A stretch of 64,000 nt of DNA, taken from sequence record PV593634.1. The stretch is one strand, 5' to 3'. A program made the position numbers and the translations under genes. Under the pieces are notes generated by a model that made no database searches, was not told where the DNA came from, and saw only the letters and a list, made by a program, of their open reading frames with translations. Positions 4,801-51,232 of this stretch are shown in pieces. The stretch's first letter is position 1. Every line of letters begins with the position of its first letter.

Positions 4801-7800
4801 ACTCACGACGAAGGTCAGTACCTGGGCTGGAAACCACTGTCGCAGAGAGATCATAACTCTGCCAGATCTTAACCGTTTGAGGAACTGGAGTGATGGTTAA
4901 ACCGGCGTATGCTAGAACACTCCTTGTGATACGGTTTTCACCCATTACGTAATCTGTCTGGTCTGGAATATCCCAGCAGAAAATATAACTCCCACCTATT
5001 GTCTTCAGCCCAGTAAGTGTCACGACCATGTCATTACCATCGGCCACAACAGACTTGATTGAGAAACTAGGGTCTAGCGGATCTTGACCCACATAGAACA
5101 TGGACTCAGTTTCGTTGATGACAACGTTCGTAGTTGGTTTACCACGATAAGTCATTTTCCAACGCAGCACTGTTTCTTTCCCTTCGATCAATTCGAATGG
5201 GGAAGGAGCTACTGTACCGTTCAACTGATATACCGTACCAACCGCATCCATAACGAAATAGATAGTCGCCACGAGTTCTACAAACGTTTCACGGAATGGA
5301 GCCTTGATAGTTACCTTGTGGTCAAGCCTTACGTTACTACCTGTCTTAGGACCACTGACAACCTGCCACCAGTTATTGGCTGCATTAGGAGCTTCTGGCA
5401 AATCGATCCATGTTCCGGTAGCCGGTGCCGTAGATACCCACTTAATAGGAGAGCACTGAGCAGTGATATCCGTATTAGCGGGACCAGATACGACTTTCAA
5501 ACCGATAGGTGCAGTTCCACCCACTTCCCACAGAACAACTTTCTTACCACCGATTCCACCCAAACGTGGATAGTCATTAGGGTTACCGATATTAAATTTC
5601 TGGATACCCTCACCAAGGTGTGTGTTACCAGTTACTGGATCAACATACGTGTACTTAAGTTTAACATCTACGATACCGTGCGGGTAATCGAGAGGGATTA
5701 ACATTTTAGCGTTATAGCTTTCAGGTCCGGTGTAAGTTATTTCAACTATATCATCGGGATCCATAACCATGGACAGATTGGGGTCATTCAATGGAATAAG
5801 TTTAGCACCTAAGTAAACCTTAACAGAGAAAGCTGTTGGATCACCACTACCACCGTTAGCTGTGGCGTAAGGCAATACACGCAATGGTTCCATCTTGATG
5901 TCGACATCCATAGTCAAACTTACCCAGTCCAGGAATTCCACACCAGGTTTAGCACCACCAGGACGACGGAAGATAAACTTGATAGGACCTTTATATTCCC
6001 CAACAGGTTCGAACGCCCAGCGAGTACGCTGAGAAGCATCACCAGAACCAATCGGACCGACATTACCAATCTCAATAGCACCGTGCAGATCTGTTTCCAG
6101 ATAGTCAATGATATCCTGACCAGTATAGCTAATCACATCCTTGAACTGGAACTGTGCATCCATAGACGCACCAGAAGCCCCAACCACACCGTTATAAGAC
6201 AGTGAAGGAATTGGAACAGCTGGGTTACCGCCCATCCAAGTACCGGTGAAAGTCTTCTGACTCCATGCAGCGATATTCCAGGTAGTATCTGCTTCACCAG
6301 ACCAAGTCCAGCGACGATAATTACCACTATAACGAATCGGGAATACAACTTGCTTAGCATCAACGTCAGCATTAACAACTTCAAATGCTTTCAGGTTAAT
6401 TGCCACGTATCCATTAGGCTGCGCAGAAGCGTCTACAGCTTGCTGGAACCCAGTGGTCAGGTTAACACCGTCACACATTACAGTAGCGCTAACAACACCC
6501 TTCTGGAACATCTTAACGTTGTACACATTTGGAGTGATAGTAACTTCACTCGTAGTGTATTGCTCAGGAACTTCAACACGACGTGGATAACTGGTTCCAC
6601 CGTAAGAGTATGACATGTTCAGGAAGTCTGACACATCGATAGTCTGACCCGGAGCCAAAGGACCCGTCAGCTTGTATTCGAATGACTTCTCACCCCAAGA
6701 GGTAATGGTCAGAACACCAGCGTTGTTGTTTCCTTCTGTAGCAGCTTCAACCGTAACACGTAAACGACCAGCTGTAATTTCCTCAGCCGCATCCAACGGG
6801 ATACCTGCGAACAGGATTTCCATGTTGTACGTACCGGTTTGGTTATGTTGACCAACCAGCAGGTTATCACGCTGTCCAATCTCAAGACCCAACTCACCCA
6901 GAACCTTAGTCGCAATCACACCTTTCCAGATATGATCTTCAGTTGGCGTAGCGCCAGCTTCAGGAGACCAGAACTCTAAATGAATCTCACCCAGTCCAGG
7001 TTCAACACCCAACAGTGTCAGAACGTAATACTCGCCTTCTACCTTAACGCTCTTAAGAGTTAAAGAATCAGGGAATGTAGAAAGGTTCTGTTTGAATATT
7101 GCTTGACCACCAACAGGTTTATCCTTATACAAAGGACGAACACGCAAGATGGATTCAACGTCAACACCACCATCGATATTAGCAGGACTTACTTGACATT
7201 CGAACTTGACGACTTCTTCGCCGCCACCGCCACTATCGCCACGCTTGAGCACTTTGAACTGTGCATCAAAGTCAAGAGTCTGTTCAGTAGTGGTTGATTC
7301 AACCGCATAGAACAAACGCATGCTTAACGTAACGTCGGTATCAACTTCTTTCTGAGCATCAACGATTTCCCAACCACGAGGGGCTTTGAACTCGATGTAC
7401 TTAGAACCCACCAACACTTCGTAACGCAGGATGGTATTCAGGACTTGATCACCCATCATAACGTTCTGGCTAAACGCACCAGTATCCCACAGTTTACCTG
7501 TAGTCAAATCGTTATTGTTGATAACCGCATCGCCAGTCTTAATCGTTACACCCGTAGACCAGGTCTGACGTTTAGGAGTCGGAGCGCCTACGTCATAAGT
7601 AACAATGAAGTCTTCTGGATAGAGAATAACAGAATTAGCAGTACCACCTTTCTTAGCAGTCACGCGTAAACCAGTCTTAGTGGCACCGGCAATGGTAACG
7701 GCTTTAGAAGCAGTATCGCTTAACTGATAACGCATACCAGGAGCGTTTGGAGCAACAGGGTAAACACCGTACTTGAAGCTCAGTTTGATTTCGCCAGTTT

Positions 7801-10800
7801 CACGCCAGTTCAATTCCAATTCAGAATCGGAACTCTCCAGAATGAATGGTTCATCAGTAGAGGTGGTAATAACGTCAAAGTTAAACGTTACCTTGTCCAT
7901 GTTCTCAACCGGAGGGATTGGAGCATTAGGACGAAGGAATACCAACTTCATCTTATCTGTAGCCTGACCAGAGAAGGTGTATGGCAATTCGCCAGTAGGA
8001 CTTAACTCACCCAGAGAGATGTTGGCAGGGATTACGGAAGTACCCATATCCAACGTAACGTCAGTGATTGGCGCACCAGCATAGAGGTAGTCAAACTTCA
8101 ACACACCACCAGTACCAGCAGGACCTTCCAGACGTAACTCGGAGTCAGTCTCAACAACAAACTTCTTACCGTCATAACGTTCAATGTTGAACTCGGTCTC
8201 AACATCCATGGTGTAGTTGTTACCACCCATTTGGTAAGACAGCATCAACATTACCTGAGTGGTGATAGGACGACTGGTGTTACCGTCGATCACATACCAG
8301 GAATCAGGTTCCACAAAAGAAACGTACGGGTTAGTGCCCAGAGGAACGATAGCGTCGATCGGGACATTCTTACCAGAGGTGTCTCTCAGTGTCAGGGTAA
8401 AGCGACCACGATCCCATACCTTAACGCTATAAACAGGGTTGTTACCGATCATTACATCAGGAATAATGATGGTTGCAGGAATGACGTGTTTCTCAGGCCA
8501 CTCTTTCCCATCAGCGTCAGTATAGAGAACGTTGATTGTTACGTTGTACTTGTACTCGGTTCCTTTCTCTCCACCTTTCTCTAACAGGAAAGTTAAGGAC
8601 TTCTCACCGATAGTTTCCAACTTAACAGGTTCACCAGTACCGCTTGTTGCGGTGATAACCATTTTAGGGTCATCCAGCGGAACCGGAATACCTTCATAGT
8701 TATACTCAAGGGTAAACTGTTGTTCAGATTTCCAATAGCCACGAATGTTGGTCCCGATGTTAACCAGGTTCAGTTCTTTAGGCCATTTGATATCTGTAGG
8801 AATAACTGCATTGATTGTTGAACCAGACTTGTGGACGTAAGCCAGAGTCATGTCGTGAATACCGCCTTTAGTGGTTTCATAACCGACTACCAGACCTTCG
8901 CCTTCAACCTGAGAACCAACACCCAGAATCATGGTTTCTGGAATAGTGGAACGGGTCTTGTCCAGAATAACGTCTTTCGTTGCTTCCACACCTTTATAAG
9001 TAAAGGTAGCAGTGATCTTCCCGTTGGTACGAGAGTCTTGCTCAATGGAGGTCGGATTCCAAACACCTTTGAAAGTAATTTGGTCCCAAGCTTCCAAGTG
9101 GTAAGTAACCGGCTTGATGAACTTCTGATCTTTGGTCTCACCAACAGCCCAACCAATTTCCAACTCTAATGGCAGAGTCAGTTCTTCCTTATCAGCCCAC
9201 ACTACTTCCCAGTTCAGTTTAGAGAACGAGATGTAACGTTGTGATTCGGTAGCACGGATAAAGGTAATAGCAGAACTCCAATCAGTATCTCCAGCGAACA
9301 GTTTAAATGGCAGAGTGCCAGTTTCCCAGATCTTGGTATTAATGATTTCTTCTACATCGCCTTCGATACGCATCGGAGGGAACGTGGTACGAACTGGTAG
9401 GTTCAGACTTACACTGCTAACGTTCAGCGGATCAAGTGGGTCAGCATAGGTATATTTAACAGGGATGTATTCCTGAATATAAGTACCGATAGCTGTCCAC
9501 GTGTTGTTGAATACCAGAATACCGGTATCTTCAACACCTTGTACCTTAACTTTAGTATCGCGAGTCAGGTATTCGGTTTGCAGCTGTGGGTCGGTTAACA
9601 GAACGCGCTCACCAGCGAAGCTCAGATAAACATTAGCCAGCTCAGCAGGTTTAGCAACCTCGATGTTGGTATCACGAGCGTAGTCAGTCAGCAACAGAAC
9701 ACGAGACTGCTTAACGTTCGCGCTGATACTTAAAACACCAGTATCTTCAGGTTTAGGTTCACCTACAACACCAGGACGGATAACGTAGATCTTACCGGTA
9801 GAAACAGTCGGTAACAGTTTGGTATACTTAACGCGAATAACGTTAGTATCTTCAACATAAGAGATTTCGTCAAACGTAATGTGTTCAGGTACGACAGTTT
9901 TATCATCAACCACAATAGCGGTGGACGTAATGTCAACACCTTCCTGGAATACACGGAATTCGAATTCACCGGTTTCGTTGTTTACACCACCAATGGAAAC
10001 ACTGGACGGTACAGTAACAACTACGGTGTTCTCTTTCGGTTCTTCAGGACCTGGTTCTTTCCACGCTTTGATTTCAAAGTTCTGATCGTATTCGAAGTCT
10101 TTCCAAACACCATCAATAGAGAAACGGAACTTAGTCTTAGCAGTGGTCGTGTTATTTGGTTCTGGATCTTTAGGTGCTTCGGTGACCACCCAAGAACCCC
10201 AGCTACCCTGCATAGGCTTGATAATCCCTTTAGGATCGACAAACTCATAACCAGCAATATCACGAGTACGATCTTCGCCGTTCAGTGTAAAGATGAACGG
10301 AATCCAACCTGTGCTATAACGTTCAACCAGATACGGATCAGGATAACGCGGAGTAACACTGTAAACAGAAATACGTTTAACAGTTACACCAATACGGTTC
10401 TGTCTGGTATAACGAACACCCGTAGGAGAAATCCAACGGAAAGTTTGTAACCAGGAATCGCTGATAGGTTCACCAGGAATACCAGAGTCTTTCAGCAAGA
10501 CATAAGTAATGCCCGTTGGGGTAACACCTGTCAGTTCGATCAAACCTTCATCACCAACCACACCTGGGCGAATGTTCAGTTCAGTAGCAGGGATTGGATC
10601 GTCACCGTAGAACGCGCTTACTTCGATCTCACCAGTATCGCCCTTGTAACCAACCACGGAACTGGTTAAGCCACGGATTTCAAACTGAGGACCGGCAGTA
10701 GCAGGGATCAATACAACGTTGACATAAGCAGGAGCCGTCTCAGTTGCACCACCATCGTTATACAGGAACATTTCAGAGTACAACGCGCCTTTCTTCTCTT

Positions 10801-11959
10801 CATCTGGTTTGAAGCTAGTAGAGAGCTTACCAGAGTAGATCATAGTCAGGTCGTCAGTATCCCAACCAGCAAAAGCTAGCGTACCGAATGACGGATCTGC
10901 TTTCAGTTCGTTTGGAGGAACAGCGATCTTAACCTGGGCACCTTTATAGAAGGCCGCAATTTTGAATTCAACATCAGAACCTGATGGCGCTTCCAGAGTA
11001 GGAGGCGTAACCACAAAGGTCAGGTCGAACTCGGCATCCTTTTCGATAACCACTTTGATAATGAAAGTCTTCTTAACAGGACGTCCATTATACATGTGGG
11101 TAACACGAACCAGAATGGTGTCATTAACTTCTTTGTTCTCGGAACCAAAGATAGTTTCACCAACGATAAAGTTACCGTCATCAGAACGCTTAGGAATGGT
11201 GTAACCCGAACCTGTAGTCAACTCAACTGTAGCAGTGTGAGTAATGTCCTGAGTGGTGTTGAACCAATAGGTGTTAGGGATGCTAAAGTCTTTACCACGT
11301 TGTGTGGTGATCGTCTCTGGCAGGTTAGAGGTGATACCAGGAATATTAGCTTCATCCAGAACTAATTCGTAGATGAATACCGGATACTGACCTGAACCGA
11401 AAGAAGCATCGGTGATATCCAGCTTGCCTGATTCCAGTGTATCATAGTCAATGTAAGTCAAAGACTCACGAGACATAGAGTACACGTTAAAGAACAGTTC
11501 ACCAAAAGCCTTCATTGGGCCGTTGATAGTTTTAGCTGATTCTTGGTTTAACAGCACTCCCCAGTTGTCCAACCAAACACACCACAGCAAAGCTGCTTCA
11601 GTTGGGTTAGCTTTAACATATTCCTTTAAGTTTTCTGGATCCTGAATCTCGATGAACGGTACAGCAAAGTCATCTAAGATGTCTTTCATACCAACACGCT
11701 TGATGTCGACGTCAACACGTGCAAAACCGGTTTTGCGCGCAGTAAAGCACACGCGGGTAATACCGTCTGGGAAAGCTACTGGGTTCTCAATAACAAGATC
11801 GCCAGCTACCAGACTTGTATAACGTTCCCGTGCTAATTCGAGTTCGTCGGCAGGGCCTTCGATTTCAAGTTTAGCAATACGTTCTTTAAGGAAACGATCT
11901 ACAGGTGTGTATAACGGGTCGTTAATACACTTTTTGTTAATCTTAATTAAATCTGCCAT
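1814..11959 (-). CDS. Giant 3381-aa tail-fibre-like virion protein with tandem Ig-like beta repeats
   Basis: Long ORF rich in V/T/G/P, with recurring K(I/V)W(D/E)xG..PF and F.I..(W/Y)DG motifs. It lies in a minus-strand structural block. Confidence 0.8.
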   Translation of the reverse strand: MADLIKINKKCINDPLYTPVDRFLKERIAKLEIEGPADELELARERYTSLVAGDLVIENPVAFPDGITRVCFTARKTGFARVDVDIKRVGMKDILDDFAVPFIEIQDPENLKEYVKANPTEAALLWCVWLDNWGVLLNQESAKTINGPMKAFGELFFNVYSMSRESLTYIDYDTLESGKLDITDASFGSGQYPVFIYELVLDEANIPGITSNLPETITTQRGKDFSIPNTYWFNTTQDITHTATVELTTGSGYTIPKRSDDGNFIVGETIFGSENKEVNDTILVRVTHMYNGRPVKKTFIIKVVIEKDAEFDLTFVVTPPTLEAPSGSDVEFKIAAFYKGAQVKIAVPPNELKADPSFGTLAFAGWDTDDLTMIYSGKLSTSFKPDEEKKGALYSEMFLYNDGGATETAPAYVNVVLIPATAGPQFEIRGLTSSVVGYKGDTGEIEVSAFYGDDPIPATELNIRPGVVGDEGLIELTGVTPTGITYVLLKDSGIPGEPISDSWLQTFRWISPTGVRYTRQNRIGVTVKRISVYSVTPRYPDPYLVERYSTGWIPFIFTLNGEDRTRDIAGYEFVDPKGIIKPMQGSWGSWVVTEAPKDPEPNNTTTAKTKFRFSIDGVWKDFEYDQNFEIKAWKEPGPEEPKENTVVVTVPSSVSIGGVNNETGEFEFRVFQEGVDITSTAIVVDDKTVVPEHITFDEISYVEDTNVIRVKYTKLLPTVSTGKIYVIRPGVVGEPKPEDTGVLSISANVKQSRVLLLTDYARDTNIEVAKPAELANVYLSFAGERVLLTDPQLQTEYLTRDTKVKVQGVEDTGILVFNNTWTAIGTYIQEYIPVKYTYADPLDPLNVSSVSLNLPVRTTFPPMRIEGDVEEIINTKIWETGTLPFKLFAGDTDWSSAITFIRATESQRYISFSKLNWEVVWADKEELTLPLELEIGWAVGETKDQKFIKPVTYHLEAWDQITFKGVWNPTSIEQDSRTNGKITATFTYKGVEATKDVILDKTRSTIPETMILGVGSQVEGEGLVVGYETTKGGIHDMTLAYVHKSGSTINAVIPTDIKWPKELNLVNIGTNIRGYWKSEQQFTLEYNYEGIPVPLDDPKMVITATSGTGEPVKLETIGEKSLTFLLEKGGEKGTEYKYNVTINVLYTDADGKEWPEKHVIPATIIIPDVMIGNNPVYSVKVWDRGRFTLTLRDTSGKNVPIDAIVPLGTNPYVSFVEPDSWYVIDGNTSRPITTQVMLMLSYQMGGNNYTMDVETEFNIERYDGKKFVVETDSELRLEGPAGTGGVLKFDYLYAGAPITDVTLDMGTSVIPANISLGELSPTGELPYTFSGQATDKMKLVFLRPNAPIPPVENMDKVTFNFDVITTSTDEPFILESSDSELELNWRETGEIKLSFKYGVYPVAPNAPGMRYQLSDTASKAVTIAGATKTGLRVTAKKGGTANSVILYPEDFIVTYDVGAPTPKRQTWSTGVTIKTGDAVINNNDLTTGKLWDTGAFSQNVMMGDQVLNTILRYEVLVGSKYIEFKAPRGWEIVDAQKEVDTDVTLSMRLFYAVESTTTEQTLDFDAQFKVLKRGDSGGGGEEVVKFECQVSPANIDGGVDVESILRVRPLYKDKPVGGQAIFKQNLSTFPDSLTLKSVKVEGEYYVLTLLGVEPGLGEIHLEFWSPEAGATPTEDHIWKGVIATKVLGELGLEIGQRDNLLVGQHNQTGTYNMEILFAGIPLDAAEEITAGRLRVTVEAATEGNNNAGVLTITSWGEKSFEYKLTGPLAPGQTIDVSDFLNMSYSYGGTSYPRRVEVPEQYTTSEVTITPNVYNVKMFQKGVVSATVMCDGVNLTTGFQQAVDASAQPNGYVAINLKAFEVVNADVDAKQVVFPIRYSGNYRRWTWSGEADTTWNIAAWSQKTFTGTWMGGNPAVPIPSLSYNGVVGASGASMDAQFQFKDVISYTGQDIIDYLETDLHGAIEIGNVGPIGSGDASQRTRWAFEPVGEYKGPIKFIFRRPGGAKPGVEFLDWVSLTMDVDIKMEPLRVLPYATANGGSGDPTAFSVKVYLGAKLIPLNDPNLSMVMDPDDIVEITYTGPESYNAKMLIPLDYPHGIVDVKLKYTYVDPVTGNTHLGEGIQKFNIGNPNDYPRLGGIGGKKVVLWEVGGTAPIGLKVVSGPANTDITAQCSPIKWVSTAPATGTWIDLPEAPNAANNWWQVVSGPKTGSNVRLDHKVTIKAPFRETFVELVATIYFVMDAVGTVYQLNGTVAPSPFELIEGKETVLRWKMTYRGKPTTNVVINETESMFYVGQDPLDPSFSIKSVVADGNDMVVTLTGLKTIGGSYIFCWDIPDQTDYVMGENRITRSVLAYAGLTITPVPQTVKIWQSYDLSATVVSSPGTDLRRELTIIGVSDPRIEVKTKASGQPHRIQIIGAPETEEVVDVVYNVKISDTYGGQTVQVTIPTTFEAWDQVQYKATLRKDMVNKLILFKDGEKDVISVPAVMSGSEYFVLFFDTLVWNKNSPNGSNANNVSIINNFTGGKGLIKHYTGGTGSGSYISVGVQPVKEGLEDGYQLVEYMETPTGGVTRPNGYPQGTLDKNVSRCPITWEMFKPEVVFKDGILPDPIIIPAGAKPYVSIKVPLSLTFGRININLGDTTTGNSGVVTNDVFRLHGAAGTDYIDVESMFENTGESDIETVIPVVVNYWYKGLTGTPMKVYTFNYDYPVIFKGTPGAPDPVVEVTGITEPTTDVWKANTTYPFSVQVDGTNVPLTATNVTAISVDTNEYIQQGTFTEGWKAIKGTEEGITVPVTWKFTFFHNLRSYELTATTNVVINPYDGVELKVTLLNPAEFNKGILSRVSQSTGYSFQVELRGKILDNAGTRPYSLWVTKTNSTMIKGSNLTTTQPYVYTGMLGLVDGLVSEDTDWYVGLTAKETDVNAVEGVDFVKLTIPTYCYDPNRFYPVTWTKELKGTVGQAMNWNYTMRKGITPINMTSSGFGTGLADFGAGNQELAVNGADWWRNPNYLQLKFANVIPVGEKVTPTVFTLGPQSVHVSLHAKFTDINLVQVSTVEHPIATATTEEVTARIKDSGDVPFHVTWKGDDVTSQVSAVRVQSNSYVEMRDGKWYVKFAEIANTTVLPVFELDIRLENVLFTLKLPIKFNILGWNGKEIVATADPLLLGIGEHGLINIKGNYSGAPLPGNVTFDKANSDGAGMVTFGAMNVTEDNQLAIVVTGDTAGRGEVKVQLRSVHDTGNSNPGSDFLDITIPTEVIPANLTPITDFAETGEGSRFVPAVLKQAVLLGEDQLDNNDPGLAIELLNSDVLTIESLGTSTITYNFSEPTSVPIARTAQLKFTYKGRSEYVVDITVTQNPVEARPVITNLTPMTVEYGKSYATPFKVEVAQ

Positions 11960-20944: not shown

Positions 20945-20986
20945 CATAATCCCCTACCCCTCCTTTATGGAGTGGGTAGGGTTATG
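20945..20986. terminator. Dispersed palindrome family copy A (bidirectional terminator)
   Basis: CCCCTACCCCTCC-TTTAT-GGAGTGGGTAGGG flanked by CATAA and TTATG, between convergent genes. Confidence 0.75.
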
Positions 20987-21003
20987 AATTACTTTAATTA
21001 TTT

Positions 21004-21665: not shown

Positions 21666-21721
21666 AAATGACTTATTACCCGTGTGTATAAAAATACAGA
21701 CAGATATTATTAAAGTGTACA
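21666..21721 (+). promoter_or_regulatory. Tandem putative early promoters (variant at 21666-21690, consensus copy at 21697-21721)
   Basis: AAATGACTTATTACCCGTGTGTATA and CAGACAGATATTATTAAAGTGTACA both carry TATTA-N5-GTGTA. Confidence 0.7.
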
Positions 21722-27786: not shown

Positions 27787-28439
27787 TGAACAGTACTGCA
27801 TACCTGAAAAACGATATTAAGTTCGTCCAGGCTACCACATACTCCATGATTATGGCGTGCGATTCTAATGGCGGGATCGGTTATAAGAACGGCTTGCCGT
27901 GGGGTCGTTGTGATGTTGATATGAAGTGGTTCCGTGCCAGTACGCTGGGTAAAATCATCGTCATGGGTCGTAGTACATTTGAATCTCTGGATTCTAAACC
28001 GCTACCTGGTCGTATCAATATTGTTCTGTCCACTACTCTGGATCCTCAGATCGGTAAAGACTGGAACAAAGAAAATGAAAACGACATTAAGAAAGGCTAT
28101 CTGCTTATTCTTAAAGATGTCGGTGCAGTCCGTAAATTTATCGAAGACTCCCTTGGTATCTTACATAACGGTGGTGAGGTAATGGTAATCGGTGGAGCGC
28201 TGGTTTATTCCGCATTCTGGGATATTTGCTCTCGTCTATATCTTACTACCTTTGACGGTACTTTCGATTCTGATGTCCAGGTTCAGATTCCGATGGAAAA
28301 CTTTGAATTAATCTATCTGGATAAACGTAGTCGTTTAAATCCGCAGTTCGCTATTTACGATTGTGTCAAAGATGACAGTCGCCCATTAATCATTACTCGC
28401 GAGGAGTTGCAATCATGTTTAAAATCCCTGACCATTTAG
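27786..28439 (+). CDS. folA: Dihydrofolate reductase
   Basis: MACDSNGGIGYKNGLPW..DMKWF, VMGRSTFES, PLPGRINIVLS and VIGGALVY. Confidence 0.95.
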   Translation: MNSTAYLKNDIKFVQATTYSMIMACDSNGGIGYKNGLPWGRCDVDMKWFRASTLGKIIVMGRSTFESLDSKPLPGRINIVLSTTLDPQIGKDWNKENENDIKKGYLLILKDVGAVRKFIEDSLGILHNGGEVMVIGGALVYSAFWDICSRLYLTTFDGTFDSDVQVQIPMENFELIYLDKRSRLNPQFAIYDCVKDDSRPLIITREELQSCLKSLTI

Positions 28440-28672
28440 TAACTGAAGTTAAAGCTGGTGAAACTTTCCACGTCTGCAAGATGGGACACGGTAAAGCATC
28501 ACTGGGTGGTCAGAAAGTTGTTATCGAAGTTCCGTCTAACGGTTTAAAGTTGGGTGACCGTTTCTTCGCTACAGGTACTAACCGTTTAGTACGTAGACTG
28601 ACGCTTGGCAACATGGTTGCTGTCCCGGATAAGAATACGACTATCCAATATAAAGGTCGTCCTATCGTTTAA
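28415..28672 (+). CDS. Hypothetical protein (85 aa)
   Basis: GAGGAG SD; overlaps the DHFR end. Confidence 0.75.
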   Translation: MFKIPDHLVTEVKAGETFHVCKMGHGKASLGGQKVVIEVPSNGLKLGDRFFATGTNRLVRRLTLGNMVAVPDKNTTIQYKGRPIV

Positions 28673-28679
28673 CCCAAAT

Positions 28680-28705
28680 GGGGAGTCGGGTAACACCGGC
28701 TCTCC
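28680..28705 (+). terminator. Hairpin
   Basis: GGGAGTCGG-GTAACA-CCGGCTCTC. Confidence 0.45.
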
Positions 28706-28717
28706 TTAGGAGTTATC

Positions 28718-28837
28718 ATGGATTTATTTTCGCAATTTGCATTGTGGTGTTTAGGCGCTATTGCTACTGGTTTTGTTTGTACTCTCTTTACACGTGGTTT
28801 AACCTATTTGAAAAACAAACTGTTTAAAAAATCTTAA
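28718..28837 (+). CDS. 39-aa single-TM peptide below the track cutoff
   Basis: AGGAG SD. MDLFSQFALWCLGAIATGFVCTLFTRGLTYLKNKLFKKS. Confidence 0.65.
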   Translation: MDLFSQFALWCLGAIATGFVCTLFTRGLTYLKNKLFKKS

Positions 28838-28859
28838 ACAGATATTATTAAAGTGTTAA
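28835..28859 (+). promoter_or_regulatory. Putative early promoter copy, upstream of clpP-groEL
   Basis: TAAACAGATATTATTAAAGTGTTAA. Confidence 0.7.
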
Positions 28860-28887
28860 GGTTATCAAGTTTAATAAGGAGACTTGA

Positions 28888-29550
28888 ATGTCAGAAGTTA
28901 ATGAAGTAAAGGAAGCGATCAAACCACCTACCGTATACGAAATGTTTCTATGTGGTTCGATAGATGCTGACAGCGCTACTGAGTTCTGTAAGTTAGCAGG
29001 ACAGAATTATAATCGTGACCCGTTCGTGATCAACGTCAATAGTACTGGCGGTGACGTGAATGCTGGGTTGGTTATTAATGATGTACTGGATACATTCATG
29101 ACTAACGTTGCGTTTGTGGTGGGTTGTTTCTCAGGTTCGATGGCTGTAACGCTAATGCAGAACCCGGAGTACTTCCGACTGGCATATAAAAGTTCACGTT
29201 TATTATGTCATGGTCTGAAGGTCACAGTTGTCGGTGGCATGGATGAAGTTGCTAACCAATGTAATAACGTCAATGCGGTACGAGAGAACATCATCGATCG
29301 TTACTCAAGAGCGTGCGGGTTAGAAGGCGACGAACTGATTGAGAAAGTATTCAATAAAGATCGTCTCTATTCAGCCCAGGATGCTTTAGAACTCGGAACT
29401 CGTGGACTGATCGATGCGATCATCCTACGCGACTTCGGTGCTCATAAGTATCTCTGTCGAACTCGTGGTGGGTTGAAGGTCATCGACATCATCAAACATA
29501 CTCCTCACGACATTCCTGATTTACCAGTATGGGAGCCGCCAAAGAAATGA
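28888..29550 (+). CDS. clpP: ClpP-like serine protease
   Basis: LCGSID, VNSTGGDV, FSGSMA (Ser), LLCHG (His), KDRLYSAQDA (Asp) and GLIDAI. Confidence 0.85.
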   Translation: MSEVNEVKEAIKPPTVYEMFLCGSIDADSATEFCKLAGQNYNRDPFVINVNSTGGDVNAGLVINDVLDTFMTNVAFVVGCFSGSMAVTLMQNPEYFRLAYKSSRLLCHGLKVTVVGGMDEVANQCNNVNAVRENIIDRYSRACGLEGDELIEKVFNKDRLYSAQDALELGTRGLIDAIILRDFGAHKYLCRTRGGLKVIDIIKHTPHDIPDLPVWEPPKK

Positions 29551-29972
29551 CATTCTCATTCATGTGGTTCTTAATCGGTATTGCTATTGCAGCATATATC
29601 GCAATGGGACTTAAAACTGCAGGTATGTTCTTCTGGTGTCTTGGAACTTCTCATGGAAGTAACAGACCTAAGTGGTATCTCCCGATGGAGATAGGTTACC
29701 TGATCGGCATGATTCTGGTCTGGCCTTTCTTCTATCTGTGGTTGTACGCACAGTCGTTTATATCGACTCGCGAACCTAAACATGTAAAGGAACATAAGGG
29801 ACCGATCTATGTCCATCGTTACATCCCGGAAGCCCAATACGCTTGTTACGGAGTGGCGCACAGTTATCACGACGAGAACCCACTGGTCATCTACCAGGAC
29901 ATCAAAACAAAGAAGTTATATCACTGTACGGAAACCTATTTTGAGAACAACATGAAGTTGATCTCCAAGTAA
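29547..29972 (+). CDS. Membrane protein with a C-terminal DUF1653-like domain
   Basis: ATGA overlap with clpP. Two TM segments, then YVHRY..Y..YGVAHS..E.PLVIYQD. Confidence 0.7.
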   Translation: MTFSFMWFLIGIAIAAYIAMGLKTAGMFFWCLGTSHGSNRPKWYLPMEIGYLIGMILVWPFFYLWLYAQSFISTREPKHVKEHKGPIYVHRYIPEAQYACYGVAHSYHDENPLVIYQDIKTKKLYHCTETYFENNMKLISK

Positions 29973-30019
29973 GTTGTATTAAAGACAATCCCAATTTAAT
30001 TAGATATAGGAATAAAGAA

Positions 30020-31585
30020 ATGGCTGAGCACATCGATTCAATGTTTACCGAAGTTACTTTCACCAACAAAACAGACACTCGTGAAATCGTTAACGAAGTC
30101 GTTGAACATGCATTTGAATCTGTATGTTCTACAATGGGTCCGAATGGTTCTTATGTGGTTATCAACCAGATGAACCGTCCTCGTGTAACCAAAGATGGTG
30201 TAAGCGTTGCGAAGGCATTGGACTTCAATGAACCGCGTCGTAATCTGATTGCTAACATCATTATGGAACCATCGATCAAGACCGATGCTGAAGTGGGTGA
30301 TGGTACAACTACCACGGTATTTATGACCTATCATTTATATCAAGCATTTGGTAGTGATATGACTTTCAAGAATACTCGTTATCTTGATGGCCTGATTCGC
30401 GAAGTCGAGAAATTCCTGGGTGGGTTGGTTATTCCTGGTGATATCAACAGCGATGAATTCCGTAACATGTTGATGACATCTTCGAACTATGAAGAAGAAA
30501 TCGTTGACAAAGTTCTGGAAATCTATAAGACCCACGCATTCCCGAATATCCGTCTGATCAACAGTCCAAGTCTGCCAGCAGATAAGATCGACTATACTTC
30601 CGAAATCAAATTCGAAGGTCAGTTCGGTGCACCTAACTTTATCCCGAAAGGTGATATCCTGAATGTAGGTCGTGGTCAGGCTAAAATCATTCTGATCGAT
30701 GGTCGTATTGATCGTCTGTCTCAGAAACAGATTACCGAAATCAATAGCCTGGGTTTGGTGTTCATCATTGCTCGTAACTTTGAGCCTGGTGTAATCAACG
30801 CAATCAACGCAGAGAACCAACGTATCGGTCGCACAACGATCCTGCCGTACAAAATCAATGCAGCGGGCACTTTGGGAACTGATACAATTGCTGACCTGGG
30901 TAAACTGATTGGTGTCCAACCTCTGTTTGGGATTGACAACCTGGATGTTGAACTGGTTAAAGATCCTATTACCGATGTGTATTTCCACACCACAGGCATT
31001 CTGCTAGATAAGGATAACCAAACTGTTAAAGATATCTCTGAAGATATCCTGACTGATCTGGATCCTCGTTATGAAGCAATGTCTGTAATCGATCGTCAAG
31101 CTGCAATTGGTTTGGATCTGTTCCGTCGTATCTCTCGACTGCGTGCAAATAACGTGATCATTAATGTCTCTGGCATAACACCTTCGGATGCAACCGAACG
31201 TTATTATCGTTATGAAGACGTAATGAAAGCTGCACGTACGGGTCAACAGTTCGGCGTAATTCCAGGTATCGGTTACGGCTACCTGAAAGCGTCTGACTTC
31301 GTCCTGGGCCTTCCTGCGCAATCTGATGAGGGACTTGAGCATTGTCGCAAGGTATTAGCGGAAGTACTGTGTGCTCAGTATGAACATTTAACCGGTTTCG
31401 AATATAACAATGATGGCGATGCGATCTTTGTTGATCTGGTAACTGGTGAAGAGTCTCGTACTCCGATGAATGTTTATGATAACGCAGCGGCTACCATGAC
31501 AGCACTGAAAGGTGCATGGCAAACTGCTAAGACTCTCGGCAAGATTAGTAACGTAATGGGCCGTAGTAATAAAACCTATTCATAA
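30020..31585 (+). CDS. groEL: GroEL-like chaperonin
   Basis: TMGPNG, VTKDGVSVAK, VGDGTTTT, GVIPGIG and VYDNAAAT. No GGM tail. Confidence 0.93.
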   Translation: MAEHIDSMFTEVTFTNKTDTREIVNEVVEHAFESVCSTMGPNGSYVVINQMNRPRVTKDGVSVAKALDFNEPRRNLIANIIMEPSIKTDAEVGDGTTTTVFMTYHLYQAFGSDMTFKNTRYLDGLIREVEKFLGGLVIPGDINSDEFRNMLMTSSNYEEEIVDKVLEIYKTHAFPNIRLINSPSLPADKIDYTSEIKFEGQFGAPNFIPKGDILNVGRGQAKIILIDGRIDRLSQKQITEINSLGLVFIIARNFEPGVINAINAENQRIGRTTILPYKINAAGTLGTDTIADLGKLIGVQPLFGIDNLDVELVKDPITDVYFHTTGILLDKDNQTVKDISEDILTDLDPRYEAMSVIDRQAAIGLDLFRRISRLRANNVIINVSGITPSDATERYYRYEDVMKAARTGQQFGVIPGIGYGYLKASDFVLGLPAQSDEGLEHCRKVLAEVLCAQYEHLTGFEYNNDGDAIFVDLVTGEESRTPMNVYDNAAATMTALKGAWQTAKTLGKISNVMGRSNKTYS

Positions 31586-31591
31586 CTAGTA

Positions 31592-31619
31592 TCGGGCCGA
31601 GGGTAATTCCTCGGCTCGA
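31592..31619 (+). terminator. Hairpin after groEL
   Basis: TCGGGCCGAGG-GTAATT-CCTCGGCTCGA. Confidence 0.6.
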
Positions 31620-31666
31620 ACTCATGTCCTCTTATTCTTTTTGGTTTCCAACTAGAGGGCTCAGTT

Positions 31667-31948
31667 GTGTTATTAAAAAAGATAGCGGCAGCAAAAGGAG
31701 CTGGGCGTAAACAGATAGCAGAGTTGGACAATGTTGTTGGCTGTTTGTTTATGGCTGTGGTATTTAGTTTGGCTGTCATTGAGGGCTACTTCGTTTTTGG
31801 TTATTTCGGTATGGGTGTTTTAGTGACTCGCATTGGTGGAATAATTTTTGAAGTGAGACGCAATTTATTTGATAGACCTTTCTTTCACTACCTGTTACTC
31901 ATCGCTATACCCGGTGAGATCTTTTATGACTTATTTTTGAGTAAGTAA
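31667..31948 (+). CDS. Possible small membrane protein (start uncertain, perhaps ATG 31751)
   Basis: Hydrophobic C-terminal two-thirds; fills the gap before tdk; weak SD. Confidence 0.4.
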   Translation: MLLKKIAAAKGAGRKQIAELDNVVGCLFMAVVFSLAVIEGYFVFGYFGMGVLVTRIGGIIFEVRRNLFDRPFFHYLLLIAIPGEIFYDLFLSK

Positions 31949-31959
31949 GGAAATGAACA

Positions 31960-32544
31960 ATGGCCAGTTTATATTTCTATTATAGTTCCATGAATGCTGG
32001 GAAATCTATTGATCTGCTGCGTTCTAACTATAACTATCTTGAACGTGGGATGAAGACACTAGTCCTCAAACCCGCAATCGACACTCGTGAAGAAACGGCA
32101 GTCGTTCGCTCACGTATTGGGTTAGAGGTTGAGTGCGACCTCTTCAAACCTGACGATAACCTATGGTGGGTTGTTAATCGCGCGCTGGGTATCACTAACC
32201 AGATCCATTGTATTTTCATAGATGAAGCACAGTTCTTAACACCAGAACAAGTTAATCAATTAGGTCGCATCACTAACGAGCTTGATATTCCGGTTCTGTG
32301 TTATGGGTTACGGACTGACTTCCAGGGTAATCTTTTCCCAGGTTCTGCCAAGTTACTTGGTATTGCTGATAAGCTTACGGAATTGAAAACGATCTGTTGG
32401 TGTGGATCTAAAGCGACAATGGTTCTTCGTATGGACGAGGATGGTAATGTCGTTCGCGATGGTGCACAGGTCCAGGTTGGTGGTAACGACACTTATGTTT
32501 CTGTGTGTCGTAAACATCATGCTGATGGGCGTGGTCACTGTTAA
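31960..32544 (+). CDS. tdk: Thymidine kinase
   Basis: YYSSMNAGKS, IFIDEAQFL, CYGLRTDF, and Zn-binding CWCG...CRKH. Confidence 0.96.
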   Translation: MASLYFYYSSMNAGKSIDLLRSNYNYLERGMKTLVLKPAIDTREETAVVRSRIGLEVECDLFKPDDNLWWVVNRALGITNQIHCIFIDEAQFLTPEQVNQLGRITNELDIPVLCYGLRTDFQGNLFPGSAKLLGIADKLTELKTICWCGSKATMVLRMDEDGNVVRDGAQVQVGGNDTYVSVCRKHHADGRGHC

Positions 32545-32558
32545 GTTGGAAACTATTT

Positions 32559-32583
32559 CAGACCTATATCATCTAAGTGTAAA
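32559..32583 (+). promoter_or_regulatory. Putative early promoter copy
   Basis: CAGACCTATATCATCTAAGTGTAAA. Confidence 0.75.
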
Positions 32584-32618
32584 TACATTAACGTATTAAA
32601 CCTACTGGAGATATAGAT

Positions 32619-32972
32619 ATGACTAATTTCATCGAAGACATGATCGAAGAAGGCTTCATCGGTAACAAAACTAAACCATCTGGTCTGATGGCTACAGTTG
32701 AAAACATTGTTGGCGAAGGTCGTGGTAACATGGCTGCAGCAATCGCTGGTGTAGCTGGTGCTGTTGCATTGGAACTGGTAAGTCCTACTGGTTCTAAAAC
32801 TTCTGCTGTAGTTGCAGCAGTAGCTGGTGGTGCTGCAGTTTATGCTGCTCGCGATCTGATCAATGCAGCTCCTACCAATACACCTCTGGCTACTGGTATC
32901 GGTGTGACTTCTGCATACATCGGTATGCTCGGCGGTCGTGTTGCAGCTGATTACTTCCCAGGCAACGTGTAA
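32619..32972 (+). CDS. Gly/Ala-rich glycine-zipper membrane protein (117 aa)
   Basis: GGAGA SD. AIAGVAGAVA, VAAVAGGAAV and GIGVTSAYIGMLGG. Confidence 0.8.
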   Translation: MTNFIEDMIEEGFIGNKTKPSGLMATVENIVGEGRGNMAAAIAGVAGAVALELVSPTGSKTSAVVAAVAGGAAVYAARDLINAAPTNTPLATGIGVTSAYIGMLGGRVAADYFPGNV

Positions 32973-32977
32973 CATAA

Positions 32978-35323: not shown

Positions 35324-35365
35324 CATAAGACCCCTACCCCTCCTTGCGGAGTGGGTAGGGTTATC
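35324..35365. terminator. Dispersed palindrome family copy B
   Basis: CCCCTACCCCTCC-TTGC-GGAGTGGGTAGGG, between convergent genes. Confidence 0.75.
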
Positions 35366-35382
35366 TTAATCATTATTTTTAT

Positions 35383-39282: not shown

Positions 39283-39325
39283 CATAGTTCCCTACCCCTC
39301 CGTAAGGAAGGGTAGGGGGTTATGT
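39283..39325. terminator. Dispersed palindrome family copy C
   Basis: CCCTACCCCTCC-GTAA-GGAAGGGTAGGG followed by GGTTATGTCTGTTT. Confidence 0.75.
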
Positions 39326-39332
39326 CTGTTTA

Positions 39333-43679: not shown

Positions 43680-43714
43680 CCCTACCCCTCCGTTAGGAAG
43701 GGTAGGGGTTTATG
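43680..43714. terminator. Dispersed palindrome family copy D
   Basis: CCCTACCCCTCC-GTTA-GGAAGGGTAGGG followed by GTTTATGTTTGTTT. Confidence 0.75.
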
Positions 43715-43719
43715 TTTGT

Positions 43720-48314: not shown

Positions 48315-48917
48315 TTAGGATTCTGGATCCCAATCGGTGTCTTCATCTGGATCAGGTGCTTCGGAAGTATTAATGTCATGTTCGTCGTCGTCACCGAAGC
48401 TTGCTTCGATTTCTTTGGTGTCAACAACTTGGTGACCTTGCATAATCTCTTCAGGTCTGATCTCGTCGTCTGGATCTTCTATATGGATAATAGGAGCCAG
48501 TGGATCAAGTACGAAAGAGCTGGAACCGTAAGTAGGCATGATGATCTTGCCGTTTGATACTTCTGTTAATGCGTTAACAAAGGTAGCAAAGTTAGCTCGG
48601 TTGTCTTCCAATTCTCTGTCCTTGAGTCTCTCTTTACGATCGTCACGGATAGTCTTTTCAATCTGAGCTAAGATGGTATTAATGGAATCCATCAGCTTCG
48701 GGTTGTTAGGTTTGTTAATGATCGTCTGCATCGCAATATCAAGTAACAGGTTACGTTGACGTTGAACAGTATTGATCAGGGTGCTTTCAGCTTCCTTGTC
48801 TTGAGGACCTTTAAGTAACTTATTTATCTCTGCAATCAAGGCGTCCTTATCTTGCACCGTTTTCAATTTATCATCAGACGGTGGGGCTGGATGAATCTCA
48901 TCAGCGTGATCGAACAT
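48315..48917 (-). CDS. Hypothetical protein (200 aa) with an acidic C-terminus
   Basis: AAGGAAG SD; helical coiled-coil-like core. Confidence 0.75.
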   Translation of the reverse strand: MFDHADEIHPAPPSDDKLKTVQDKDALIAEINKLLKGPQDKEAESTLINTVQRQRNLLLDIAMQTIINKPNNPKLMDSINTILAQIEKTIRDDRKERLKDRELEDNRANFATFVNALTEVSNGKIIMPTYGSSSFVLDPLAPIIHIEDPDDEIRPEEIMQGHQVVDTKEIEASFGDDDEHDINTSEAPDPDEDTDWDPES

Positions 48918-48953: not shown

Positions 48954-48978
48954 TAGACAGATATTATCAAAGTAGATA
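48954..48978 (+). promoter_or_regulatory. Putative early promoter copy (variant)
   Basis: TAGACAGATATTATCAAAGTAGATA. Confidence 0.6.
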
Positions 48979-49028
48979 CGGTGGAAATCTAATTTAATAA
49001 TATCCGTTATTAAATCAGGACTGAGGTA

Positions 49029-49586
49029 ATGAAAATGTTTTTAGACAAACTGTTGAACAAGATTCCTTTCTTCCGTAATCGTCGAATCAAGAAGATAAAG
49101 GAACAGCTTGTTGCCATTAAAAATGATTTTAAAGAGGGACACTTTAATGACGTATATATCAGTAGTCTTCACAATATCCTAAATAACCCGCTTGTAAGCT
49201 TCTCAGAGGAGCTAATCCGGTTATCATTGGGAAGTGTGGAGATGTATTCTAAGTCTTCTTCTGGAGCTTCTAAGCTCGTTAGTAAACCTATAATCTCGAG
49301 ACCCACTCTTGAGAAATCGACAATCATTAGTTTAGAGGTGAAGAATAAATATGTATCAGAATGGTATTCGAATGAACAGACTTTATTAGAGTTTGTGGAA
49401 ACTATGAAACTGTACTTACTGATTCAGTGTAAGATGTTTCAACCGGTGGATGCAAGGACTCACGAAGAACTTAACCAGCTCGGAGCAGGAACTGACCCAG
49501 ACTTTTTAGACTCGGTATTGTATAGGTTACTGTTGTCCGATCTCGTGAATATAACAACCTTCTACGTAGAGAGCAAATATGATTGA
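49029..49586 (+). CDS. Hypothetical protein (185 aa)
   Basis: GAGG SD; follows the promoter motif. Confidence 0.7.
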   Translation: MKMFLDKLLNKIPFFRNRRIKKIKEQLVAIKNDFKEGHFNDVYISSLHNILNNPLVSFSEELIRLSLGSVEMYSKSSSGASKLVSKPIISRPTLEKSTIISLEVKNKYVSEWYSNEQTLLEFVETMKLYLLIQCKMFQPVDARTHEELNQLGAGTDPDFLDSVLYRLLLSDLVNITTFYVESKYD

Positions 49587-51176: not shown

Positions 51177-51218
51177 CATAACCCTACCCACTCCGAAAGG
51201 AGGGGTAGGGGGTTATGC
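51177..51218. terminator. Dispersed palindrome family copy E (inverted relative to A and B)
   Basis: CCCTACCCACTCC-GAAA-GGAGGGGTAGGGG followed by GTTATGCTTGTTT. Confidence 0.75.
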
Positions 51219-51232
51219 TTGTTTGTTTCTTT

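Follow-up and report, generated by a model that had tools for sequence, protein, structure and literature searches.

The chaperonins of phages are recognised as a third group of chaperonins. [quoted passage not shown] Experimental study of the OBP locus is limited to gp246. Early promoters of the virion RNA polymerase in phiKZ-like phages are marked by an AT-rich motif of about 10 nt (PMC7598289; PMC10914365), and the mapped terminators of phiKZ consist of a hairpin followed by TTAT (PMC10914365). The ClpP of jumbo phages has so far been mentioned merely in passing, and phage-encoded or viral ClpP does not occur as a named topic in the literature searched. The individual parts of the locus presented below are already annotated or noted in the literature; its operon architecture and the features of its ClpP subfamily appear undescribed.

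The window, a stretch of 64,000 nucleotides from sequence record PV593634.1, comes from SXP01, a phiKZ/OBP-like jumbo phage of Shewanella whose 270-kb genome carries subunit genes for both a virion and a non-virion RNA polymerase. A tightly packed unit at 28839-31622 consists of a promoter motif, a ClpP-like gene, a gene for a protein with two transmembrane (TM) helices, a chaperonin gene and a hairpin. A first-pass annotation had named a promoter, a ClpP, a membrane ORF, a chaperonin and a hairpin, and all of them were found where it had placed them. With moderate confidence, we read the unit as a conserved operon that an OBP-like jumbo phage, equipped with two RNA polymerases of its own, would express early and that would encode a partner-independent protease, a membrane protein and a chaperonin. 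The unit and its flanks contain the following features.

28679..28706, plus strand: hairpin closing the upstream unit (GNAT, DHFR, 85-aa gene); fold of -21 kcal/mol, z=-3.95
28718..28837, plus strand: 39-aa hydrophobic ORF directly 5' of the promoter; AGGAG Shine-Dalgarno, one hydrophobic segment
28839..28862, plus strand: promoter motif, probably early and of the virion RNA polymerase; core GATATTAT at 28841-28848, then TGT about 8 nt on
28888..29550, plus strand: ClpP-superfamily serine protease, 220 aa; from Pfam, PDB alignments, AF2, Foldseek and alignment with E. coli ClpP
29547..29972, plus strand: two-TM protein, 141 aa (147 aa from an alternative in-frame ATG at 29529); two hydrophobic helices
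30020..31585, plus strand: GroEL-like chaperonin, 521 aa; orthologue of OBP gp246
31588..31622, plus strand: terminator-like hairpin; -23.6 kcal/mol, z=-5.74, core stem 31592-31603 with 31608-31619
31631..31642, plus strand: pyrimidine-rich CTTATTCTTTTT tract, 9 nt past the hairpin, read from the sequence

The order of ClpP-like protein, TM protein and chaperonin is shared with OBP (gp246, OBP_244/OBP_245), as are DHFR upstream and thymidine kinase downstream, the type of promoter motif, and a hairpin after the chaperonin gene. The two loci differ in that the OBP motif precedes a 71-aa TM ORF (OBP_243) abutting ClpP. The OBP TM protein is also longer (189 aa) and has a longer soluble domain, whereas SXP01 has a short form without the GAGxSxGE loop region. 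Promoter, hairpin and gene set recur in over 15 relatives, which belong to several genera or come from metagenomes.

The hairpin at 28679..28706 is a neighbour outside the three-gene unit, and a similar one occurs at the equivalent place in N1M2 and Yubaba. The 39-aa ORF has no GenBank annotation; small homologues of it are present in N1M2 (N1M2_191) and Yubaba. Minus-strand ORFs within the three genes (e.g. 30335-30988, 217 aa) found no support and were set aside as chance ORFs. An Rfam scan of 28400-32000 gave no credible match.

Putative transcription signals

The 17-mer CAGATATTATTAAAGTG at 28839-28855 has an identical copy at 21701-21717 and variants at 48958, 25607 and 33992. Its 8-mer core GATATTAT occurs five times in the window, each time in intergenic DNA and oriented toward the next gene. 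Because intergenic DNA makes up 5.2% of the window, this placement has a P of ~4e-7, while the number of copies shows no enrichment. The SXP01 genome as a whole contains 21 sites, at least 15 of them intergenic, and two are located 37 and 53 nt in front of ORFs heading the gene clusters of the non-virion RNA polymerase beta subunits. The motif agrees with the definition of early phiKZ-like promoters, an AT-rich motif of about 10 nt located 5' of early operons that include the non-virion RNA polymerase genes (PMC7598289). It differs from the phiKZ promoters in that its sequence is clade-specific, and for the OBP-like clade it is known here from sequence. Since the non-virion RNA polymerase genes have the motif upstream too, the virion RNA polymerase most likely transcribes the unit as an early operon. 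A sigma-70 promoter scan of 26-34 kb gave fewer promoter-like matches than shuffled sequences, which is uninformative because the phage uses its own RNA polymerases.

The position of the motif is maintained in relatives. In N1M2, Yubaba, AH04, Kc263, PS1 and three metagenomic phages it stands 30-50 nt in front of ClpP, and in OBP and D3 it is directly 5' of a small ORF preceding ClpP. In pEt-SU, Survivor and the metagenomic phage L019, whose units lack ClpP and retain the chaperonin, it is found directly upstream of the membrane-protein gene. No motif occurs between ClpP and the chaperonin gene in any relative inspected.

At the other end of the unit, the chaperonin stop codon is directly followed by strong hairpins of differing sequence in OBP, N1M2, Yubaba, Kc263 and AH04 (z from -2.85 to -5.9); the hairpin of D3 is weaker (z=-1.76). 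Tracts like CTTATTCTTTTT come after the hairpin in N1M2, Yubaba, Kc263 and OBP. This arrangement of a GC-rich hairpin and a TTAT/T-rich tract resembles the intrinsic terminators of phiKZ, but the TTAT of SXP01, a signal read from the genome, is situated about 9-13 nt past the stem instead of directly after it. A canonical terminator scan of 26-34 kb did not call the hairpin because the T-run is not adjacent. Within the unit, the 47-nt gap 5' of the chaperonin gene contains neither structure (z=+0.25) nor a promoter motif.

These observations agree with the first-pass description of one transcription unit without an internal terminator, closed by a hairpin. The position of this hairpin is kept in relatives despite its different sequence, and motif and hairpin stand at the same places in relatives of many genera. 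We infer co-transcription and early timing from this comparison. The virion RNA polymerase would start at the GATATTAT-type promoter (about 28841-28862), cross the three genes and stop at the hairpin and T-rich tract after the chaperonin gene.

The ClpP-like protein

The ClpP-like gene is missing from the GenBank annotation of SXP01. Its product matches Pfam CLP_protease (PF00574, MEROPS S14) over residues 18-179 with E=6e-18 (65.7 bits against a cut-off of 20.2). The triad had been described as intact, and S84, H108 and D158 indeed align with the catalytic Ser, His and Asp of E. coli ClpP and of ClpPs with solved structures. All 30 relatives compared keep Ser and His, and the third position is Asp in 9 and Glu in 21. 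The AF2 monomer model (pLDDT 90.2) contains the long handle helix at residues 118-143, and the top 50 Foldseek matches of this model are all ClpPs, with TM (target) scores of 0.73-0.83. The modelled fold is that of ClpP, including the handle helix, and the conserved residues indicate that the protease is probably catalytically active.

A protein with a true ClpP fold, handle helix and conserved catalytic residues might be expected to use host components. The first-pass annotation had proposed that it docks host ClpX or ClpA, or mixes with host ClpP, and so redirects ATP-dependent degradation (e.g. of defence proteins), with the membrane protein as an adaptor. Searches of the window and of the complete 270-kb genome by tblastn and phmmer with E. 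coli K-12 queries, which very divergent proteins would escape, detected no homologues of ClpX, Lon or GroES, and no AAA+ candidate was found in SXP01. Within that scope, the earlier statement that Clp ATPase and GroES are absent holds, and any ATP-dependent action would rely on a host partner because the phage has no detected unfoldase of its own. Action against host proteins has been proposed for jumbo-phage ClpP by Iyer et al. (2021), with the PS1 orthologue as the example (PMC7824862).

What argues against such docking is the extent to which the protein departs from canonical ClpP (E. coli; T. thermophilus 6HWM), with which it shares the fold, the handle helix and the Ser-His-Asp positions. 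It is ~20% identical to E. coli ClpP, and tblastn with the E. coli protein misses the gene. The Pfam match begins at position 18 of the profile, residues 1-16 are predicted with low pLDDT and without secondary structure, and the gate and helix A region of E. coli ClpP, which is needed for ATPase coupling, corresponds to gaps in the alignment. From this alignment at 20% identity and the monomer model, we infer that the canonical N-terminal axial gate has been lost. The tyrosine of the hydrophobic docking pocket (E. coli Y62 / S. aureus Y63; role described in PMC8182300) is replaced by Asn in SXP01. Across nine family members, this position is Tyr in OBP, N1M2 and Kc263, Trp in AH04, Asn in SXP01, D3 and ZPAH34, Leu in PS1, and Gln in the second Kc263 paralogue. 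Some members of the family might therefore still dock an unfoldase, namely those that keep Tyr or Trp.

The C-terminal part of canonical ClpP borders the docking face. The phage subfamily adds to this part a conserved, family-specific beta module of ~35 aa (about residues 177-213), in which T192, R193, G195, K197 and D200 are invariant, and most relatives have Glu for the catalytic Asp. No cognate AAA+ gene lies near the SXP01 gene. Scores are far below every curated ClpP equivalog cut-off, with 41.7 bits against 308.6 for TIGR00493 and 54.7 against 228 for the best model, PRK12553 (NCBIfam). With these differences taken together, the use of host ClpX, ClpA or ClpP by the SXP01 protein appears unlikely. 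The reading we prefer is that the ClpP-like protein would most likely be a self-compartmentalised, ungated protease, which needs no AAA+ partner to degrade unfolded or disordered polypeptides.

Several GenBank records label orthologues as head-maturation (prohead) proteases, among them the RefSeq entries for N1M2 and AH04, and the Z90 paper groups the ClpP-like gene with the assembly genes (PMC12837969). The best PHROG matches of the SXP01 protein are also 'head maturation protease' families (E=1e-13). Like these proteases (NF045542; PHROG 2976/94), it is encoded by a phage, belongs to the ClpP superfamily, lacks the cellular N-terminal region and shows weak profile similarity, but its 49.6 bits against the ClpP-related head-maturation model NF045542 of NCBIfam are far under the cut-off of 120. 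The location of the gene does not fit this role either, since it stands behind an early-type promoter among nucleotide-metabolism neighbours, outside the head-gene module and neither fused nor adjacent to scaffold or capsid genes. On the record it lies at 214.9 kb, with the major head gene at 109.6 kb and the portal gene at 119.2 kb, a distance of about 100 kb. Moreover, it is dispensable in close relatives: the units of pEt-SU, Survivor and L019 lack it, which is unexpected for an essential maturation protease. phiKZ-like phages use a different, gp175-type prohead protease; a PHROG scan of ten head-module ORFs of SXP01 gave no labelled match to this type. That the ClpP-like protein matures the head is, on this evidence, extremely unlikely.

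The membrane protein and the chaperonin

The start codon of the middle gene at 29547 overlaps the ClpP stop codon as ATGA. This overlap and the two hydrophobic helices fit the first-pass description of a translationally coupled membrane protein, but its assignment to DUF1653 (PF07866) was not confirmed by Pfam, which gives no match in the SXP01 protein at E<=1. PHROG 9878 matches the TM part. The C-terminal domain of ~60 aa is predicted to form a small beta-barrel with a weak DUF1653-like fold. When its model was compared by Foldseek with 350,542 PDB chains, the DUF1653 structure 3BE3 ranked first, with a TM (target) score of 0.51 over 54 columns and an E of 0.095 (not significant). The likeness is confined to the C-terminal ~55 residues of the model. 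A Pfam scan of 17 relatives gave DUF1653 once, below threshold and likewise not significant (E=0.078), and in nine relatives with the soluble domain only it was not found. A profile search of 1.84 billion representatives recovered a family of 20 phage-type relatives and reached no cellular DUF1653 proteins, from which the SXP01 protein also differs in being membrane-anchored. A DUF1653 identity is thus weakly supported. The protein would reside in the inner membrane, with its small beta-barrel domain probably on the cytoplasmic side.

The chaperonin was confirmed as the GroEL-like member of the unit by full-length similarity to solved phage chaperonins: residues 10-520 match PDB 6HDD with E=5e-200, and EL gp146 (6TMT) is matched with E=6e-49. 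It belongs to PHROG 5725 (E=9e-114), is 62% identical to its OBP orthologue, and contains a GDGTTT nucleotide-binding motif that is invariant in the family. Its score against the cellular GroEL model TIGR02348 is 81.5 bits, below the cut-off of 582.1, and its identity to E. coli GroEL is 22%. An IMG/VR scan with the chaperonin alignment revealed four further jumbo-phage contigs. By analogy with OBP gp246, the SXP01 chaperonin would work without a co-chaperonin.

Linkage of the three genes

The first-pass annotation had described the unit as a self-contained fold-or-degrade system. The distribution of its genes speaks against this, as three units have lost ClpP (pEt-SU, Survivor and L019), and the chaperonins of EL-, Miami-, pTD1- and RisingSun-type phages occur without ClpP or the membrane protein. 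No hidden ClpP was detected by Pfam in the genes 5' of the chaperonin in EL, Miami, pTD1, RisingSun or pEt-SU. The chaperonin is present without ClpP in several phages and therefore does not need the protease; it is the constant member of the unit, and the protease is an accessory member.

The three genes could accordingly be functionally unrelated early genes that share a promoter through genome compactness, their linkage reflecting collinearity of the clade. A ThyA-GNAT-DHFR-...-TK block is collinear in all relatives, and the adjacency of ClpP and chaperonin is weak evidence of shared function for that reason. The losses of ClpP and the chaperonins that occur alone fit this explanation, as do the activity of the OBP and EL chaperonins alone in vitro (PMC9598537) and the second ClpP paralogue of Kc263, which is distant from the chaperonin gene. 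However, gene order is shuffled within the cluster and the linkage is nonetheless kept. The TM module is located upstream of ClpP in the Aeromonas phages D3, ZPAH34 and AerS_266. In SXP01, OBP, N1M2 and Yubaba it lies downstream in fused form, and in AH04 and metagenomic phages it is a separate gene. In the data searched, members of the ClpP subfamily came exclusively from phage-type contigs. An IMG/VR scan with the ClpP protein returned no relatives, and the ClpP alignment contained no conserved stretch on which a further scan could be based. Where the surroundings of the ClpP gene could be examined, a chaperonin gene accompanied it in every case and was almost always adjacent. Simple co-transcription of unrelated genes seems somewhat unlikely, and we retain the operon of partner-independent protease, membrane protein and chaperonin as the preferred reading, in which the three products may or may not be coupled physically or functionally.

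One form that such coupling might take is a coaxial 7:7 stack of a ClpP-like heptamer on the single-ring heptameric chaperonin, possibly via the C-terminal module. The chaperonin would then drive the protease in place of a hexameric AAA+ unfoldase, and the middle protein would perhaps tether the complex to the membrane. The observed restriction of the ClpP subfamily to chaperonin-bearing phages, the missing AAA+ docking features, the conserved extra module and the lack of a detected phage unfoldase are compatible with this arrangement. The occurrence and function of the chaperonin without ClpP, together with the three losses of ClpP from the unit, speak against it, and we consider it very unlikely.

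Even without coupling, the locus provides a clean consensus for the early promoters of the OBP-like clade, defines an uncharacterised ClpP subfamily and adds a gene missing from the SXP01 annotation. If the three products act together, they would constitute a protein quality-control module that is encoded by a virus and produced early in infection, and also an example of a ClpP working without its usual AAA+ partner.

Organization of the unit and its annotation

The sequence record of Shewanella phage SXP01 (PV593634.1, 269,939 bp; window position = record position minus 186,000), to which 3.2 kb spanning the unit is 100% identical, annotates subunits of both a virion-associated and a non-virion multisubunit RNA polymerase. 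This makes SXP01 a jumbo phage of the phiKZ/OBP type that carries out its own transcription. Three ORFs occupy 28888-31585 on one strand, and the ORFs, promoter copy and hairpin were all located as described in the first-pass annotation.

Elements of the ClpP-chaperonin unit
28839-28855 (+), 17-mer promoter motif; exact second copy at 21701
28888-29550 (+), ORF1, ClpP-like protein, 220 aa; Pfam CLP_protease, E = 6e-18
from ATG 29547 (+), ORF2, middle protein; ATGA overlap with the ORF1 stop; alternative in-frame ATG at 29529
30020-31585 (+), ORF3, chaperonin, 521 aa, preceded by a 47-nt gap
31588-31622 (+), hairpin 3' of the chaperonin gene; 15 bp, -23.6 kcal/mol, z = -5.7

RNA folding predicted no structure in the 47-nt gap preceding ORF3, and a CTTATTCTTTTT tract starts 9 nt past the hairpin. 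The GenBank record, which has only 193 features per 270 kb, lists the middle ORF and a "putative GroEL" and leaves out the ClpP-like ORF. It passes from DHFR (213786-214439) straight to the middle ORF (215547-215972), with no feature at 214888-215550 (window 28888-29550).

Several observations concern the surroundings of the unit. At 28679-28837, a hydrophobic ORF of 39 aa is located between a terminator-like hairpin and the promoter of the unit, and the 3' arm of the hairpin extends into its Shine-Dalgarno sequence. Tiny homologues are found at the equivalent place in N1M2, where the promoter motif overlaps their final codons, and in Yubaba. Downstream, ORFs overlap on opposite strands at 32553-32975 (-) and 32619-32972 (+); GenBank has the plus-strand one (117 aa, Gly/Ala-rich), and the minus-strand ORF is probably spurious. 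The early-gene block is flanked by two giant ORFs, 1814-11959 (-; 3381 aa) and 53498-60772 (-; 2424 aa), the latter annotated as a structural lysozyme.

Promoter motif, hairpins and gene order in relatives

The core of the promoter motif, GATATTAT, has five copies in the window, all of them intergenic and directed toward the next gene; intergenic sequence makes up 5.2% of the window. Genome-wide there are 21 sites, at least 15 of which are intergenic. About 16 SXP01 sites carry the extended consensus found across relatives (approximately a[CA]GATATTAT[CT]ta..TGTA) and are situated 37-69 nt 5' of plus-strand genes. The motif at PV593634.1 positions 61250 and 111877 lies 37 and 53 nt, respectively, 5' of ORFs heading non-virion RNA polymerase beta-subunit gene clusters, which supports its assignment as an early promoter. 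Early promoters of the injected virion polymerase are marked by an AT-rich motif of ~10 nt that can be found bioinformatically, whereas middle and late promoters cannot (Sokolova et al. PMC7598289; Putzeys et al. PMC10914365). Because the distribution of the motif matches this published definition, the unit is most likely an early operon.

In nearly all relatives with the shared gene order, a GATATTAT-type motif is present 30-50 nt 5' of ClpP; in OBP and D3, it is just 5' of a small ORF that comes before ClpP. No relative compared has the motif between ClpP and the chaperonin gene. A strong post-chaperonin hairpin of unrelated sequence occurs in OBP, N1M2, Yubaba, AH04 and Kc263; the corresponding hairpin of D3 is weaker (z = -1.76). 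The proposal of a single transcription unit is thus well supported by phylogenetic footprinting of the motif and hairpin positions.

Elsewhere in the window, at 48958-49006, two opposite-strand copies of the motif (48960, plus; 49004, minus) stand back to back and separate the divergent genes 48315-48917 (-) and 49029-49586 (+). Between convergent genes, at 20952-20995, 35332-35375, 39290-39330, 43680-43715 and 51185-51225, there are hairpins of nearly the same sequence (CCCTACCCCTCC ... GGGTAGGG, with TTAT after it). They are similar to the experimentally mapped intrinsic-terminator motif of phiKZ, a hairpin and then TTAT (PMC10914365), and are probably bidirectional terminators.

A synteny survey, as suggested in the first-pass annotation, revealed that the ClpP-middle protein-chaperonin order recurs within a common arrangement: ThyA ... 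(GNAT) - DHFR - small gene - ClpP - TM/soluble protein - chaperonin - small gene - thymidine kinase (TK). This order is common to OBP, N1M2, Yubaba/Sureiya, AH04, Kc263, three genera of Aeromonas phages (D3, PS1, ZPAH34/AerS_266) and three metagenomic jumbo-phage contigs. The transmembrane (TM) and soluble modules of the middle protein are rearranged between relatives yet remain linked.

Arrangement of the middle-protein modules
SXP01, OBP, N1M2, Serratia phages: TM and soluble modules fused
AH04, metagenomic contigs: TM and soluble modules as separate genes
Kc263: soluble module alone
Aeromonas phages D3, ZPAH34, AerS_266: TM module 5' of ClpP, no soluble module
Separate TM-module gene 5' of ClpP in Aeromonas phage stretches: L006 3328-3564, L021 1951-2193, L022 1958-2203

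The separate TM-module gene is unannotated in ZPAH34 and AerS_266. In pEt-SU, Survivor and a metagenomic contig (L019), ClpP is cleanly missing, so that the membrane-protein gene directly adjoins the promoter motif. In the more distantly related EL, Miami, pTD1 and RisingSun, the chaperonin gene lies between ThyA and TK, with neither ClpP nor the middle protein.

Features of the three proteins

The catalytic triad of ORF1 appears intact, as previously proposed. In alignments with solved ClpPs (HMMER) and with E. coli ClpP (MAFFT), S84, H108 and D158 correspond to the catalytic Ser-His-Asp residues. Neither the Ser nor the His varies among 30 family members, and an acidic residue fills the third position throughout (Asp in 9, Glu in 21). 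The AF2 model (pLDDT 90) contains the long handle helix, and its best structural matches are genuine ClpPs (TM ~0.8). Identity to E. coli ClpP is, however, ~20%, and tblastn of the SXP01 genome with that query did not recover the gene. ORF1 scores under all curated ClpP cut-offs and under that of the ClpP-related head protease.

ORF1 differs from canonical ClpP in further ways. Its first 16 residues are unstructured in the AF2 model and cannot be aligned with either the axial loop or helix A, and the Pfam CLP_protease match begins at model position 18. The position of the conserved tyrosine in the docking pocket (E. coli Y62; for its role, see PMC8182300) is Asn in SXP01 and Tyr, Trp, Asn, Leu or Gln among relatives. 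An additional module of ~35 residues, modeled as three strands and one helix (pLDDT 94-97), is found at the C terminus of every family member, with T192, R193, G195, K197 and D200 invariant. The family comprises 37 clusters in a collection of 5.8 billion proteins and is restricted to phages or metagenomes.

Two variants of ClpP were observed in relatives. Kc263 has a second paralogue (7210-7824 of its record; 3408-4022 of stretch L023) with Ser/His/Glu intact and the C-terminal module present. This paralogue is remote from the chaperonin gene, adjoins a ribonucleotide reductase gene and has a variant of the promoter motif 5' of it. In the Aeromonas phages whose TM module is a separate gene, ClpP has a longer, different C-terminal tail in place of a soluble-domain gene 3' of it.

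Several database records label this protein a head-maturation protease. That function is unlikely, because the promoter is of the early type, the gene lies ~100 kb from the head genes, relatives can do without ORF1 and its score falls short of the cut-off.

In ORF2, two hydrophobic helices precede a domain of ~60 residues that is rich in beta structure. ORF2 has no family match in Pfam or NCBIfam, and its profile matched only 20 representatives among 1.84 billion. The family alignment shows a TM module (FWCxGT, WPxFYLWL) and a soluble module (..GKGGxY..G.A..VxYxD..TxKLYHRT..DFxxRM), which is shortened in SXP01. The proposed link to DUF1653 relies on three weak hints that agree: a sub-threshold Pfam match in one relative (E = 0.078), the DUF1653 protein 3BE3 as the top PDB match in Foldseek (E = 0.095, TM 0.51) and the motif resemblance noted in the first-pass annotation. 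The soluble domain has at best a DUF1653-like fold, and membership is not demonstrable.

ORF3 matches the solved single-ring chaperonin OBP gp246 (6HDD) with E = 5e-200 and EL gp146 (6TMT) with E = 6e-49, but cellular GroELs with only ~1e-17 to 1e-21. Its identity is 62% to OBP gp246 and 22% to E. coli GroEL, and its score is far under the GroEL equivalog cut-off. The SXP01 chaperonin is a newly found member of an already known family. OBP gp246 is a heptameric single ring, ATP-dependent and independent of a co-chaperonin, and phage endolysins are in vitro substrates of the EL, OBP and AR9 chaperonins (PMC9598537).

Searches of the SXP01 genome were in line with the earlier statement that no Clp ATPase or GroES is present. 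They detected neither a protein resembling ClpX or Lon nor a plausible ORF with an AAA+ Walker A motif, and an E. coli GroES query gave no match.

Function of the protease and the chaperonin

ClpP, with the PS1 orthologue as example, has been listed among peptidases that jumbo phages may turn on the host (Iyer et al. 2021, PMC7824862), and a 2025 paper on phage Z90 placed the neighboring ORFs for "Clp protease" and "GroEL" among the assembly genes with no analysis (PMC12837969). Beyond such mentions of individual genes, the literature searched contained no description of the operon, the middle-protein family or the distinctive ClpP features, which are apparently undescribed; a search by phrase found no mention of a phage-encoded or viral ClpP under such a name.

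The proposal that protease and chaperonin form a fold-or-degrade system is not well supported. The chaperonin is clearly independent of the protease, because it is kept after three losses of ClpP and in many phages that lack ClpP. The ClpP-like subfamily was seen only in phages also carrying a chaperonin gene. A direct 7:7 complex of chaperonin and protease is an attractive but unsupported possibility.

It had also been suggested that the phage ClpP hijacks host ClpX or ClpA. The sequence and model of ORF1 argue against such classical docking; the favored reading is therefore that ORF1 is an ungated ClpP-like protease that would act independently of a partner and be made early, alongside the chaperonin.
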